From positions 124,001 through 188,000 of the IMG/VR virus record IMGVR_UViG_3300023184_000024: DNA of 64,000 bases. One strand, given 5' to 3'. How positions within the stretch are numbered: the first letter of the stretch is position 1; every line of letters begins with the position of its first letter. Below are positions 16 through 9,022 of the stretch, one piece after another. Below the pieces are notes generated by a model that did no database searches, was not told the origin of the DNA, and saw nothing but the letters and a program-made list of their open reading frames with translations. The translations under genes and the position numbers were made by a program.

Positions 16-210
16 ATGAAGCACAAGATGATCGTGCCACAACGTAACCCCTTCGTTGTGTTGGCACTAAAACGCAAAGCGGGTAGTCATCGCAAGAGCA
101 ACAAAGCTCTGCGTCGATGCGAAAAATCTAGGGATCGTGGTGAAGCGGTATCACAGCAGACTTTTAATCTGCCAATCCCGAGTTCGAATCTCGGCGGTCC
201 CACCATATAA
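16..210 (+). CDS. small basic protein whose reading frame runs through tRNA-Lys
   Basis: AAGGAG at 4-9, 6 nt before ATG; Lys/Arg-rich first 38 codons; no stop until 208-210, after the tRNA CCA. Confidence 0.55.
   Translation: MKHKMIVPQRNPFVVLALKRKAGSHRKSNKALRRCEKSRDRGEAVSQQTFNLPIPSSNLGGPTI
131..205 (+). tRNA. tRNA-Lys(TTT)
   Basis: cloverleaf, GCAGA-CT TTT AA-TCTGC, TTCGAAT loop, CCA. Confidence 0.95.
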
Positions 211-271
211 AAACACATTGGTGTTGGTTTAACAAATAAGTAAACCTAGTTATAGTGTGTTTCTATATGGT
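202..271 (+). repeat. inverted-repeat stem, copy 1 of AAACACAYT/AGTGTGTTT element
   Basis: ACCATATA-A-AAACACATT pairs with AGTGTGTTT-C-TATATGGT. Confidence 0.7.
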
Positions 272-277
272 AGAGTT

Positions 278-367
278 GGAACGGTCCCATAATGGTATTG
301 GAGCGGATTGCTAATCCGTCGAGTGGTGAAAGCCGCTTTCTGGGTTCAAGTCCCAGTCGTTCCGCCA
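278..367 (+). tRNA. tRNA-Ser(GCT)
   Basis: cloverleaf with long variable arm, anticodon GCT, G73, CCA. Confidence 0.95.
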
Positions 368-374
368 ACATTTT

Positions 375-450
375 GCCCTTATAGCTCAGTTGGTAGAGCA
401 CCTGATTTGTAATCAGGTTGTCCCGTGTTCGATTCATGGTGGGGGCACCA
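375..450 (+). tRNA. tRNA-Thr(TGT)
   Basis: CCTGA-TT TGT AA-TCAGG, CCA. Confidence 0.95.
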
Positions 451-457
451 AACATAT

Positions 458-533
458 TCTCTTATAGCTCAGTCGGTAGAGCAAGTGACTGTTAATCACT
501 AGGTCCGTGGTTCGAGCCCACGTAAGGGAGCCA
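458..533 (+). tRNA. tRNA-Asn(GTT)
   Basis: AGTGA-CT GTT AA-TCACT, CCA. Confidence 0.95.
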
Positions 534-541
534 ATTTCTTA

Positions 542-633
542 ACCTCGGTAGTTTAACGGTAAAACAGCGGATTTATATCCCGTGCGCAACAGATAATTGG
601 CCAATGTGGGTTCAACTCCCGCCCGAGGTACCA
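542..633 (+). tRNA. tRNA-Ile(TAT) with atypical 22-nt variable arm
   Basis: ACCTCGG/CCGAGGT acceptor, loop TT TAT AT, T arm GTGGG-TTCAACT-CCCGC, A73, CCA. Confidence 0.85.
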
Positions 634-641
634 TCAAGTTT

Positions 642-715
642 GTATCCATAGTGTAATGGCAGCATCGCGGTCTCCAAAACCGTCAGTCTAGGTTCGAGTC
701 CTAGTGGGTACGCCA
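642..715 (+). tRNA. tRNA-Trp(CCA)
   Basis: GCGGT-CT CCA AA-ACCGT, G73, CCA. Confidence 0.95.
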
Positions 716-731
716 AATAAAGGAGCATAGT

Positions 732-1337
732 ATGCCAGCAGTATTTTTAGTCAGTGATACACACTTCGGACACGCTGGTGTGTGTCGCTTCATGCACCCC
801 GATGATCCTGAAGTAAAATTACGGCCGTGGACTGATCCCGATGAGATGGATGAGGAAATGGTGCGACGATGGAACGACCGTGTGCGACCCAACGACAAGG
901 TCTACCATTTGGGCGATGTTGTCATCAACCGTAAGGCCATGAAAACCTTGCATCGCTTGAATGGTGACAAGGTGTTGATACGCGGCAACCATGACATCTT
1001 CCGTGACGAGGAGTACAGAGAACACTTTCGTGAGTTGCGAGCATACCATGTCATGAACGGAATGATCTTGAGTCATATTCCTGTGCACGAAGCCAGCTTG
1101 GGCAGGTTTGGTACAAACATTCACGGACACTTGCACGCCAGTCGTGTAAAGAAAGTGCGTGGCTACGATGTCGAAACAGGTACCATGTTGTACAGCAACG
1201 AGATTGATCCACGCTACCATTGTGTCTGCGTAGAACAAACCGACTACACGCCCATCTTGTTTGAAGATGTGATCAAACGCATTGAAGCAGAAGGCGGTAG
1301 TGTGGGATTTAAAAACGGCAACGGACCAACTATGTAA
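732..1337 (+). CDS. calcineurin-like metallophosphoesterase
   Basis: SDTHFGH, HLGD, RGNHD, HGHLH motifs; AAGGAG RBS. Confidence 0.9.
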   Translation: MPAVFLVSDTHFGHAGVCRFMHPDDPEVKLRPWTDPDEMDEEMVRRWNDRVRPNDKVYHLGDVVINRKAMKTLHRLNGDKVLIRGNHDIFRDEEYREHFRELRAYHVMNGMILSHIPVHEASLGRFGTNIHGHLHASRVKKVRGYDVETGTMLYSNEIDPRYHCVCVEQTDYTPILFEDVIKRIEAEGGSVGFKNGNGPTM

Positions 1338-1342
1338 TACAT

Positions 1343-1417
1343 CGCGGGGTGGAGAAGTGGTAACTCATCGGGCTCATAACCCGAAGATCGACGGTTCGAA
1401 TCCGTCCCCCGCAACCA
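1343..1417 (+). tRNA. initiator tRNA-fMet(CAT)
   Basis: C1:A72 mismatch, GGG/CCC anticodon stem, CAT, CCA. Confidence 0.95.
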
Positions 1418-1418
1418 A

Positions 1419-1883
1419 TTACTGAGTAATTTGCCCTGTTACAGCATCCACATGCACAGGTTGGCGATCAGCAAATGTAAAATCATAAAAAGGATTGCCT
1501 CGATAATCAACAGTTTGGCGTAATCTACAGAACAACCAAACATTTGTGATACCTGCTTTGGTCATAGCCTGTTGTGCTTGAGCACAACTCAGTGTAGGTG
1601 GATATACAAATGCCTGACACTCAGCCACACGAGAGTCATCAAAAGTGGGACCAGTGGCATTGCCCGTAATGTCAACAGTTATAGCATAAGGCTTGGTATC
1701 TTCGGATCCTTGCCAGCAGGTATACATAGTGCCATTATGGTCAGCCTCAGCAAGATAAAATTTAGATCCGTTTTGATGTAGATCCATAAGGCTTTTGGCT
1801 CCCCAGATCTGTTGATCAAAACTCAAGGGAGACAACAACCTTAGTCGTCGTAAATACTGTTTTATACGTGTTATTATTGACAT
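1419..1883 (-). CDS. hypothetical protein
   Basis: 154-aa ORF with upstream AAAGGA and TAAATA on minus strand; C-terminal VHVDAVTGQI is PepSY-like. Confidence 0.65.
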   Translation of the reverse strand: MSIITRIKQYLRRLRLLSPLSFDQQIWGAKSLMDLHQNGSKFYLAEADHNGTMYTCWQGSEDTKPYAITVDITGNATGPTFDDSRVAECQAFVYPPTLSCAQAQQAMTKAGITNVWLFCRLRQTVDYRGNPFYDFTFADRQPVHVDAVTGQITQ

Positions 1884-1936
1884 AATTACATTTCCTTTTG
1901 TTGATAATACTTATTTAATTAATGTTAAACATCAAT

Positions 1937-8011: not shown

Positions 8012-8014
8012 TCG

Positions 8015-8043
8015 TTGACTGCTGACTCAACATCTGTTATAAT
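8015..8043 (+). promoter_or_regulatory. sigma70-type promoter
   Basis: TTGACT-17-TATAAT with TG extension, upstream of tRNA-Leu. Confidence 0.85.
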
Positions 8044-8054
8044 ACAATAATTAA

Positions 8055-8131
8055 GCCCAGGTGATGGAATTGGTATACGTGTTGGTCTTAGAAGCCAAAT
8101 TTTGCGAGTTCGAGTCTCGCCCTGGGCACCA
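8055..8131 (+). tRNA. tRNA-Leu(TAG), short variable loop
   Basis: TTGGT-CT TAG AA-GCCAA, only 5-nt variable region, A73, CCA. Confidence 0.9.
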
Positions 8132-8139
8132 ATAAATGT

Positions 8140-8225
8140 GCGACTGTGGTGAAATAGGTAGACACAAAAGACTTAAAATCTTTCGCTGTAATGGCATGCC
8201 GGTTCGATTCCGGCCAGTCGCACCA
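8140..8225 (+). tRNA. tRNA-Leu(TAA)
   Basis: AAAGA-CT TAA AA-TCTTT, long variable arm, CCA. Confidence 0.95.
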
Positions 8226-8229
8226 ATAT

Positions 8230-8303
8230 GCTCCTGTAGTATAATGGTAATACACGCCCTTGGTAAGGGCGAGCCACAAGTTCAATTCTTGTCTGGAGCA
8301 CCA
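8230..8303 (+). tRNA. tRNA-Thr(GGT)
   Basis: CGCCC-TT GGT AA-GGGCG, CCA. Confidence 0.95.
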
Positions 8304-8307
8304 TATT

Positions 8308-8457
8308 ATGAAACTGTTCGAAGCAACAATAAAAATTAACGGTCGAGAATTCAAAGATCGTGTGGGCGCAAATAATGCCGAAGAAGCACGATTGCTTTTA
8401 CAACAACGTCATGGGCCTAGGGCAGTGCCTTATTTGCCCAAAATGATACCAAGTTAA
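8308..8457 (+). CDS. small hypothetical protein (49 aa)
   Basis: MKLFEATIKING... exactly fills the gap between two tRNAs. Confidence 0.6.
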   Translation: MKLFEATIKINGREFKDRVGANNAEEARLLLQQRHGPRAVPYLPKMIPS

Positions 8458-8459
8458 CA

Positions 8460-8549
8460 GGAAGCGTGGTCGAGTCTGGTTTATGGCAACAGTCTTGAAA
8501 ACTGTCGACTCGCAAGGGTCCGTGAGTTCGAATCTCACCGCTTCCACCA
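8460..8549 (+). tRNA. tRNA-Ser(TGA)
   Basis: ACAGT-CT TGA AA-ACTGT, long variable arm, CCA. Confidence 0.95.
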
Positions 8550-8564
8550 ATATGGAGTATTACT

Positions 8565-8864
8565 ATGTCAAACGAAAACGATAAATTCAACCATAGCAAG
8601 CGTTTGCTCAAAGATGACAATGCAGTCAACAAGCAGGTTAAAATTGCTAAATCACATGGGTTGACCAACAAGGACAAGGCAGTAAAAGAGCCACATCGTT
8701 TGGCCAAACATCATGCCATGGACTGTGGCCGTCCTGGGTGTATGCTATGTGGTAACCCACGCAAAACGTTTAAAGAACTCACTGCTCAGGAAAAACGACT
8801 GTATCAAGATGTTGACAATCCACCATCTAAGCATACAAACGGTACTTTGCCTCCTGAAGAATAA
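8565..8864 (+). CDS. basic hypothetical protein with Cys cluster
   Basis: GGAG RBS; CGRPGCMLCGNPR putative zinc-binding motif. Confidence 0.75.
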   Translation: MSNENDKFNHSKRLLKDDNAVNKQVKIAKSHGLTNKDKAVKEPHRLAKHHAMDCGRPGCMLCGNPRKTFKELTAQEKRLYQDVDNPPSKHTNGTLPPEE

Positions 8865-8867
8865 TAT

Positions 8868-8943
8868 GCCGCGGTAGCTCATCAGGTAGAGCAGCAGACT
8901 GAAAATCTGTGTGTGGCTGGTTCGAGTCCAGCTCGTGGCACCA
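8868..8943 (+). tRNA. tRNA-Phe(GAA)
   Basis: GCAGA-CT GAA AA-TCTGT, CCA. Confidence 0.95.
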
Positions 8944-8947
8944 ACAA

Positions 8948-9022
8948 CGGTCCTTAGTTCAATGGATAGAATGCTTGGCTTCGAACCAAGCGGTGTGGGT
9001 TCGATTCCTGCAGGACCGGCCA
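8948..9022 (+). tRNA. tRNA-Arg(TCG)
   Basis: CTTGG-CT TCG AA-CCAAG, CCA. Confidence 0.92.

Follow-up and report, generated by a model that had tools for sequence, protein, structure and literature searches.

The window analysed here is a 64,000-nucleotide (nt) stretch of DNA, bases 124001-188000 of the 352,754-bp virus record IMGVR_UViG_3300023184_000024, and it opens with a dense array of transfer RNA (tRNA) genes. ARAGORN finds 27 of them, all on the + strand, within 131-9022 (coordinates are those of the window unless the genome is named). By anticodon 20/20 amino acids are represented, and an initiator is also present. The whole genome has 29 tRNA genes plus a transfer-messenger RNA (tmRNA) gene by ARAGORN; 28 of the 29 are also found by Rfam, and the tRNA genes span ~12.6 kb on one strand. 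The Rfam tRNA model RF00005 reaches its gathering score for 25 of the 27 genes in the window scan and the Tyr gene also passes, at 35.1 bits, which makes 26 of 27 and leaves Asp(GUC) as the sole failure. CCA is encoded at the 3' end of every gene in the window and likewise of all 29 in the genome. Uridine at anticodon position 34 (U34) is found in tRNAs for Thr, Val, Gly, Ala, Pro, Leu(CUN), Ser(UCN) and Arg(CGN), that is, for all four-codon boxes. Our isotype calls are based on E. coli rules, and the identity marks match the anticodons (G3:U70 in Ala, G-1 and C73 in His, U73 in Cys and Gly, C1.A72 in the initiator). An earlier sequence-only reading of the window had listed these 27 genes for 20 amino acids and an initiator, all with encoded CCA and with a U34 tRNA for every four-codon box; ARAGORN and Rfam, the inspected gene 3' ends and the anticodons bear it out on all of this.

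The source is a freshwater (lake) jumbo phage with a complete genome of ~353 kb. The record has direct terminal repeats and is rated 100% complete, its GC content is 42.4%, and near-identical DNA is present in lake-water and freshwater metagenomes of several studies. No close match at the DNA level was found among cultured phages.

One member of the array, tRNA(UAU) at 542-633, has five arms. Its acceptor, D (4 bp, 7-nt loop), anticodon and T arms are in the normal places, the anticodon loop is UUUAUAU, there is an A31.C39 mismatch, and position 73 is A. The 22-nt variable region folds as a second hairpin with a 7-nt loop, CAGAUAA. This gene resembles a plain type I tRNA-Ile(UAU) in its anticodon but not in its variable region, which in that type is a loop of 4-5 nt; it resembles class II tRNAs in the length of the variable arm but lacks the body and identity marks of tRNA-Leu, tRNA-Ser or tRNA-Tyr. 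Single-sequence folding gives z = -0.34 and is uninformative, as usual for tRNAs.

Comparison across genomes supports the fifth arm. A first search of metagenome contigs, using 26 nt of the D and anticodon arms as probe, matched at least 120 contigs, nearly all of them tRNA arrays. Over 49 distinct sequences the five-arm structure is 99.5% paired, with compensatory changes at 7/7 acceptor pairs, 5/5 T-arm pairs and 3/4 pairs of the extra arm, and the covariation measures lie above all 500 shuffles and all slid controls. RNAalifold, applied to a more diverse set of 11 sequences, predicts the extra helix unaided. Covariation and this independent prediction together rule out that the extra arm is a chance artefact of ARAGORN. 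A second search, intended to lift the bias of the first patterns, used the anticodon arm alone against IMG/VR. It added 66 copies found only in this way, and the extra arm is present in 66/66. The extra loop of these copies is CAGAUAA in 53, CAGAUUA in 8, UAGAUAA in 2 and CUGAUAA in 1; G-A occupies positions 3-4 in 66/66 and U position 5 in 65/66.

The five-arm tRNA(UAU) is present in hundreds of phage contigs. Cultured phages have it too, annotated as tRNA-Ile: Vibrio phage Thalassa (MG649967) and ~40 relatives (Demerecviridae), henriette 12B8, Acinetobacter phage vB_AbaS_qsb1 and Aeromonas phage 1233. A single five-arm gene occurs in bacterial isolates of Xanthomonas, Pseudoxanthomonas, Microbulbifer and Marinobacter. 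It is accessory there, being found in 7/151 Xanthomonadaceae genomes and patchily in Gammaproteobacteria, and none was found in the E. coli genomes searched. All bacterial carriers have TilS. At 10 bacterial loci no gene neighbour is conserved, although one family of open reading frames (ORFs) is common to two Xanthomonadaceae loci (L270, L316). A loose DNA pattern run against genome contigs gave mostly chance matches, and the tRNA is held by 15/120 of the loci so collected. One Xanthomonadaceae locus (G026:C38:73625-83689) contains the five-arm tRNA, or relatives of it, three times in 10 kb and is probably a prophage tRNA array. Sporadic hairpins inserted in the variable arm were also seen in other type I tRNAs (Arg-ACG of 98 nt, Thr-UGU of 86 nt, CAU of 88 nt and Ile-GAU of 83 nt; L056, L108, L009, L025); several are capped by a GAAA tetraloop and none has an anticodon-like loop. 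A full-text literature search, with most subscription journals outside it, did not turn up any account of a bacterial or phage tRNA-Ile(UAU) with a long arm. We conclude with moderate confidence that the five-arm structure has not been discussed before, though GenBank already names the gene tRNA-Ile(tat).

The array continues beyond the window edge, and the genes found there change how the set is to be read. The gene for tRNA-Arg(ACG), at genome 123889-123963 (window -111 to -37), ends 37 nt before the window start; its 7-nt anticodon loop is CUACGAA, with A34-C35-G36, and it scores 47.2 bits with Rfam. Some 3.5 kb upstream, at genome 120386-120462 (window -3614 to -3538), is a third tRNA(CAU). 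It has C4:G69 and C5:G68, which are the acceptor-stem pairs used by E. coli TilS, and shows 76.6% full-length identity to an E. coli CAU tRNA annotated tRNA-Ile. By these E. coli rules and this similarity it looks like a tRNA of the Ile2 type, which would receive lysidine and be charged with Ile. The CAU tRNA at 6190, which the sequence-only reading thought might be Ile2, has A4:U69 and A5:U68 and resembles elongator Met; it has no E. coli match, the same type is present in relatives, and elongator Met is its most likely assignment. The phage therefore appears to carry the usual CAU trio (initiator, elongator Met and Ile2 type) plus Arg(ACG).

It follows that the supposed avoidance of lysidine and inosine, in which Ile(UAU) and Arg(UCG) were to stand in for Ile2(CAU) and Arg(ACG), is an artefact of the window edge, because Arg(ACG) and the Ile2-type CAU are both encoded in the same genome. 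The array had also been called self-sufficient. Profile searches of the complete phage genome, with Pfam profiles against six-frame translations, found no TilS (PF01171), no cytidine/adenosine deaminase of the TadA superfamily (PF00383), no CCA-adding enzyme (PF01743), no class-Ia synthetase, the class of isoleucyl-tRNA synthetase (IleRS) (PF00133), and no RtcB (PF01139), SmpB (PF01668) or Pth (PF01195). A profile search for Rnl1 had a silent control and is uninformative on that enzyme. Since no phage enzymes for charging, CCA addition or anticodon modification were found, self-sufficient is the wrong word: the set is complete by anticodon yet host-dependent.

The relatives present a similar picture. 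Three near-complete relatives of ~345 kb have 29-37 tRNAs, and each has the CAU trio, including the Ile2 type, beside the UAU tRNA. Arg(ACG) is encoded in one of the three and Arg(GCG) in another (genome G004); the third lacks both. In the stretches fetched for 63 large related arrays, ACG is found in 29 and GCG in 13. Judged by these genes, some relatives seem to have dropped the need for adenosine-to-inosine editing, and the present phage seems not to have done so.

Other tRNAs of the array also depart from the usual form. In Asp(GUC) at 3417-3492 position 8 is A, with U14, the T-loop is AUCGUUA (A54..U58), and position 73 is G; the gene gives no match to the Rfam tRNA model even at E<=10. 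The same form is found in 16 distinct relatives, in which the fold is 99.4% paired with compensatory changes at 10/20 pairs, and the 8:14 and 54:58 tertiary pairs appear to have been swapped together. A pseudogene is rejected on the strength of this kept fold. Asp(GUC) is a maintained gene, and the count of 20 amino acids therefore stands. The tRNA-Arg(ACG) has the T-loop UUUGAUU, in which position 56 is U, and its D-loop lacks the GG pair; the tertiary contact 19:56 may have co-changed here too. Leu(UAG) at 8055-8131, of 77 nt, lacks the bacterial long variable arm, while its D arm (3 bp, 11-nt loop) and A73 are Leu-like. Short Leu tRNAs of 77-78 nt are common in related arrays (e.g. L002, L005, L030) beside normal ones of 83-87 nt, with anticodons UAG, CAA, GAG and UAA. 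Some related arrays (L002, L090, L108, and L444 in G002) hold an amber suppressor tRNA of 75 nt (anticodon CUA), which ARAGORN labels 'Pyl'.

Codon usage of the phage genes gives the array a setting. GAA stands at 77%, AAA at 72% and CAA at 73%, a strong bias to A-ending codons, which are read by U34 tRNAs. AUA makes up 23% of Ile codons (14.6 per 1000 codons), and CGU and CGC together make up 47% of Arg codons, both of which an inosine-34 Arg(ACG) would read. The extra G34 and A34 tRNAs sit in boxes heavy in pyrimidine-ending codons (Gly, Thr and Arg). By standard wobble rules the 29 tRNAs should be able to read 61/61 sense codons, and this pattern of codons and tRNAs would suit a general supply of tRNA for phage translation. 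In such a supply the array would give at least one decoder per box, with U34 for the four-codon boxes and the purine-ending split halves and G34 for the pyrimidine-ending halves; Gly, Thr and Arg would each have a second tRNA, and the set would include an initiator, an elongator Met and two AUA tRNAs. We infer that it tops up or replaces the host tRNA pool in infection, so that the A/U-rich phage genes stay translated, and that the phage tRNAs would be processed, modified and charged by host enzymes, including TilS for the Ile2-type CAU and TadA for Arg(ACG). Phage tRNAs have been proposed to sustain translation once the host's own tRNAs run short or are degraded or cleaved (PMC10264068, PMC11464382, PMC11555353), and upkeep of translation under such shortage or cleavage is, by analogy, a plausible role for this array. 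Its driver may be codon mismatch, loss of host tRNAs in infection or host tRNA nucleases, each of them an idea already in print. The replacement decoding kit of the sequence-only reading holds in so far as the set is complete by anticodon and in principle covers all 61 codons; the substitution for TilS and TadA is contradicted by the genome. Overall, we give a probability of about 80% to the view that this is a 29-gene, host-enzyme-dependent array of a complete jumbo phage, in which the conserved five-arm UAU tRNA serves as a second AUA decoder.

The extra loop of that tRNA invites a more specific proposal. Its positions 3-7, G-A-U-A-A, are letters 34-38 of the tRNA-Ile(GAU) anticodon loop, and positions 34-38 are those used by bacterial IleRS for identity (PMC9976931). 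The true anticodon loop of tRNA(UAU) is without A38. Where a decoding loop needs U33 the extra loop mostly has A (53+8+2 of the 66 copies), while the variant CUGAUAA matches exactly; the A in the U33 place argues for a loop exposed to be recognized rather than one at work on the ribosome. UAU tRNA-Ile is charged inefficiently by E. coli IleRS (PMC3575796). With the loop of the extra arm, a UAU tRNA that would otherwise be poorly charged may become acceptable to a host factor, of which IleRS is the simplest candidate. Tentatively, then, tRNA(UAU) could be an undescribed class, an AUA-decoding tRNA-Ile with an 'identity decoy' hairpin for IleRS or for the machinery of N6-threonylcarbamoyladenosine (t6A), which would give mobile elements a portable, lysidine-independent AUA decoder; in this full form we regard the proposal as less likely than not. 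One other idea, that the extra loop mimics the AUA codon and pairs with the UAU anticodon, was rejected on the variants CAGAUUA and UAGAUGG, which keep GAU and lose AUA.

What the five-arm tRNA carries, and for whom its extra arm is meant, can be read in other ways. Aligned with relatives, the AUA codons of the phage stand against Ile in 50%, Val in 19% and Leu in 7%; in the same alignments AUU stands against Ile in 65%, Val in 14% and Leu in 9%, and UUA against Leu in 70% and Ile in 9%. In these alignments AUA appears to behave as Ile, with a profile like that of AUU/AUC and unlike that of Leu codons. This bears directly on the idea that the tRNA is not tRNA-Ile at all, and that its long arm makes it a substrate of LeuRS, SerRS or TyrRS, leaving AUA recoded or ambiguous. 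Precedent exists in the nematode nev-tRNA-Ile(UAU), since nev-tRNAs carry Leu (PMC3333845), and the length is class II-like with A73 as in tRNA-Leu, yet the D arm is type I (4 bp, 7-8-nt loop) and not Leu-like, the G73 needed by SerRS is missing and the anticodon is not the GUA of Tyr. The conserved extra loop moreover spells the Ile anticodon GAU, and the Ile2-type AUA reader is also kept, which would enforce AUA as Ile. We consider mischarging of this kind very improbable. We take more seriously, while still leaning away from it, the view that the extra arm acts as a handle or decoy towards some partner besides IleRS. This could be a modification enzyme or a nuclease or toxin directed at tRNA-Ile(GAU), or the arm could have a role independent of the ribosome or of EF-Tu; in another form of this view the second hairpin is a working GAU anticodon arm and the UAU hairpin the insert. 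The variable arm of an L-shaped tRNA points away from the anticodon, a geometry that speaks against standard IleRS docking. The loop sequence is conserved while the stem covaries, as is typical of a loop recognized by protein or RNA, and the loop has C32-, A37- and A38-like letters, including the A38 that the real anticodon loop lacks; the t6A machinery, reading U36-A37-A38, is an example of a modification enzyme that would fit. The missing conserved neighbour gene at the 10 bacterial loci limits the choice, as any such partner should be a universal host factor. A working GAU anticodon is opposed by the A that mostly fills the U33 place and by the first hairpin, which sits exactly at the place of the anticodon arm and is so aligned by both Rfam and ARAGORN.

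For the array as a whole, the kit independent of TilS and TadA is almost certainly wrong. The UAU and UCG tRNAs are present, independence would be useful to a phage in which no TilS or deaminase was found, and Arg(GCG), which needs no deamination, is encoded in G004 and in 13/63 large arrays; against this stand the Arg(ACG) and Ile2-type genes already described, the commonest Arg codons (CGU and CGC), the Ile2-type tRNA kept in relatives too, and the presence of TilS in all bacteria that carry the five-arm tRNA. Less easily dismissed is an array that serves mainly as counter-defence, whose replacement tRNAs escape host anticodon nucleases or other tRNA-targeting immunity and whose swapped pairs and odd arms are escape variants. 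The principle is published (PMC10264068, PMC11464382, PMC11555353), and candidate variants are at hand in the conserved deviations of Asp (A8/U14, A54/U58) and elongator Met (loop UUCAUAC), in Leu(UAG) without its long arm, and in the T- and D-loops of Arg(ACG). With no tRNA repair ligase found (RtcB; the Rnl1 control being silent), replacement would also be the sole route. A full one-per-box set rather than a few targeted species, together with the good fit to codon usage, makes us doubt, judging from the phage genes, that defence is the main purpose. Several points weigh against our own preferred view of a host-dependent supply array with a second AUA decoder. No sequencing run of RNA type was found that holds the window DNA. 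The Ile2 call draws on E. coli rules and similarity, and very divergent enzymes could escape the profile searches. IleRS docked in the normal way should not reach the variable arm, and a mimic would have to dock or fold in another way. A different partner could also be the one that the extra arm serves.

The features of the array and the tmRNA are collected in Table 1. Bacterial tRNA-Ser usually has G73, and Ser(UGA) is listed there with A73.

Table 1. Genes and other features of the tRNA array and the tmRNA, in window coordinates
Feature	Position	Strand	Evidence or remark
tRNA-Lys(UUU)	131..205	+	ARAGORN; Rfam 67.4 bits; CCA
tRNA-Ser(GCU), long variable arm, G73	278..367	+	ARAGORN; Rfam 49.2 bits
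tRNA-Thr(UGU)	375..450	+	ARAGORN; Rfam 66.8 bits
tRNA-Asn(GUU)	458..533	+	ARAGORN; Rfam 66.8 bits; ~92% identity to tRNA-Asn of phiKZ-like phages
Five-arm tRNA(UAU), 92 nt	542..633	+	ARAGORN; Rfam 54.1 bits; covariation
Extra hairpin of tRNA(UAU), variable region	584-601	+	loop CAGAUAA at 590-596
tRNA-Trp(CCA)	642..715	+	ARAGORN; Rfam 57.1 bits
Calcineurin-like phosphoesterase, 201 aa, embedded in array	732..1337	+	Pfam PF00149; phrog_547 at 4e-47
Initiator tRNA-fMet(CAU)	1343..1417	+	ARAGORN; Rfam 67.2 bits; C1.A72 mismatch, GGG/CCC anticodon stem
tRNA-Val(UAC)	1937..2011	+	ARAGORN; Rfam 57.2 bits
Non-canonical tRNA-Asp(GUC), G73	3417..3492	+	ARAGORN only; covariation in relatives
tRNA-Glu(UUC)	3653..3727	+	ARAGORN; Rfam 52.6 bits
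tRNA-Tyr(GUA), 3-bp variable arm	3733..3817	+	ARAGORN; Rfam 35.1 bits
tRNA-Cys(GCA), U73	4090..4167	+	ARAGORN; Rfam 63.5 bits
tRNA-Ile(GAU)	4176..4251	+	ARAGORN; Rfam 65.8 bits
tRNA-Gly(UCC), U73	4267..4340	+	ARAGORN; Rfam 57.5 bits
tRNA-Gly(GCC), U73	4555..4630	+	ARAGORN; Rfam 68.5 bits
tRNA-Arg(UCU)	5461..5535	+	ARAGORN; Rfam 64.2 bits
tRNA-Ala(UGC), G3:U70	5546..5621	+	ARAGORN; Rfam 70.4 bits
tRNA-Gln(UUG), G73	6112..6189	+	ARAGORN; Rfam 61.6 bits
tRNA(CAU), most likely elongator Met, loop UUCAUAC	6190..6264	+	ARAGORN; Rfam 62.8 bits
tRNA-Pro(UGG)	6270..6346	+	ARAGORN; Rfam 63.9 bits
tRNA-His(GUG), C73, G at -1 (window 6354)	6355..6429	+	ARAGORN; Rfam 62.6 bits
B12-binding radical SAM protein, 519 aa, inside array	6452..8011	+	Pfam; NCBIfam matches all below cut-off
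Sigma-70-like promoter match, TTGACT-17-TATAAT, TG	8015..8043	+	consensus match only; 12 nt before tRNA-Leu(UAG)
tRNA-Leu(UAG), 77 nt	8055..8131	+	ARAGORN; Rfam 59.0 bits
tRNA-Leu(UAA), class II	8140..8225	+	ARAGORN; Rfam 61.2 bits
tRNA-Thr(GGU)	8230..8303	+	ARAGORN; Rfam 65.1 bits
tRNA-Ser(UGA), class II, A73 per ARAGORN	8460..8549	+	ARAGORN; Rfam 52.4 bits
tRNA-Phe(GAA)	8868..8943	+	ARAGORN; Rfam 61.4 bits
tRNA-Arg(UCG)	8948..9022	+	ARAGORN; Rfam 63.1 bits
Two-piece (permuted) tmRNA, tag ANDEQFALAA	12733..13133	+	ARAGORN; RF04321 111.3 bits; RF01850 84 bits

Protein genes are interspersed with the tRNA genes. The phosphoesterase gene directly follows the UAU and Trp tRNAs; its product has a weak likeness to the ligase-associated PdeM, and homologues with up to 84% identity are found at 62 other fetched loci, mostly tRNA-array loci. 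A role in end-healing of cleaved tRNA is a guess. The radical S-adenosylmethionine (SAM) protein at 6452-8011 is class-B methyltransferase-like, by NCBIfam matches below cut-off, and no related loci were found when they were sought through it. A second B12-binding radical SAM protein is encoded among the array tRNAs, at genome 121520-123274, with a KedN5-family-like match of 185 bits that is also below cut-off. The tmRNA passes RF04321 well (111.3 bits against a cut-off of 47), and its 84 bits with RF01850 are exactly at the cut-off. Its 3' side has a strong terminator-like hairpin (13084-13101), and the tail of a 2OG-Fe(II) oxygenase ORF (12118-12756) extends into its 5' start. Relative G002 has a tmRNA too, with tag ANDEVYALAA. 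A tag of the ANDExxALAA type presumably hints at Proteobacteria as host; pmoC, sought in the phage genome as a clue to a methanotroph host, was not found.

The genes flanking the array are of phage type and encode a tail fibre, neck-appendage-like proteins, an HNH endonuclease, a MoxR-like ATPase, carbamoyltransferases and radical SAM proteins. Farther on, a long gene run at 27679-47503 includes a carbamoyltransferase-like gene (32836-34314) and a third radical SAM gene (41671-43620, - strand), and looks like a cluster for small-molecule or glycan modification. A single ORF of >4,265 aa (51068-64000, - strand) runs past the window end.

These results describe a phage lineage that keeps two AUA decoders together, one of the lysidine type and one of the UAU type, and a five-arm family that is widespread, conserved across phages and patchy in Gammaproteobacteria, with an extra loop that spells the Ile anticodon loop. 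Should the extra loop act as an identity element, it would represent a novel route to tRNA identity, separate from the anticodon and acceptor, and a ready-made part for engineering AUA reassignment. The co-swapped pairs of Asp and the class I-like tRNA-Leu offer natural tests of the features that host enzymes and nucleases need. The cultured carriers make bench tests possible, for example with Vibrio phage Thalassa on V. harveyi BAA-1116.

As a whole the array is a further example of a well-known property of huge phages. In these, many tRNAs and a tmRNA are common (Al-Shayeb et al. 2020, PMC7162821), and large freshwater phages have up to 29 tRNAs at 32-44% GC (Chen et al. 2020, PMC7674155). 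The present phage is like them in its genome of >200 kb, in its tens of one-strand tRNAs that fit its own frequent codons, and in its tmRNA. It differs from some of them in that none of their synthetase, CCA-adding or tRNA-repair genes were found, and pmoC was not found either. According to a review (PMC13191261), a tRNA(CAU) of a T4-like vibriophage was shown to carry lysidine; that phage, as described there, shares with ours a broad tRNA set, and its TilS-dependent CAU tRNA has a likely counterpart in the tRNA at genome 120386. With the proposed replacement-tRNA systems (PMC10264068, PMC11464382, PMC11555353) the present array likewise shares a broad set of phage tRNAs, which may act in the same way.

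The five-arm tRNA has its closest relatives in cultured phages. Thalassa and its ~40 Demerecviridae relatives, henriette 12B8, vB_AbaS_qsb1 and 1233 carry the same tRNA at 88-93 nt with the loop CAGAUAA, and in Thalassa it adjoins tRNA-Ile(gat); these are mid-sized phages of marine or clinical hosts, and their records say tRNA-Ile without structural comment. With the tRNA-Ile(UAU) of Mycoplasma mobile (PMC3575796) and of lactic acid bacteria it shares the UAU anticodon and the reading of AUA without lysidine. In Lactobacillus plantarum, according to studies cited in PMC9976931 (Tomikawa 2018, Uesugi 2022), the UAU tRNA stands beside a CAU tRNA-Ile, as the two types do side by side here. Those UAU tRNAs, however, are of normal length and served by an adapted IleRS, whereas ours has a fifth arm with a GAU loop and resides on phages and on accessory DNA of bacteria that keep TilS. 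The nematode nev-tRNA-Ile(UAU) (PMC3333845, PMC4300185) likewise combines a long variable arm with a UAU anticodon. The nev-tRNAs, with the body of a tRNA-Leu, accept Leu, while the phage tRNA has a type I body and an arm loop conserved in sequence, in a genome where AUA appears to be read as Ile.

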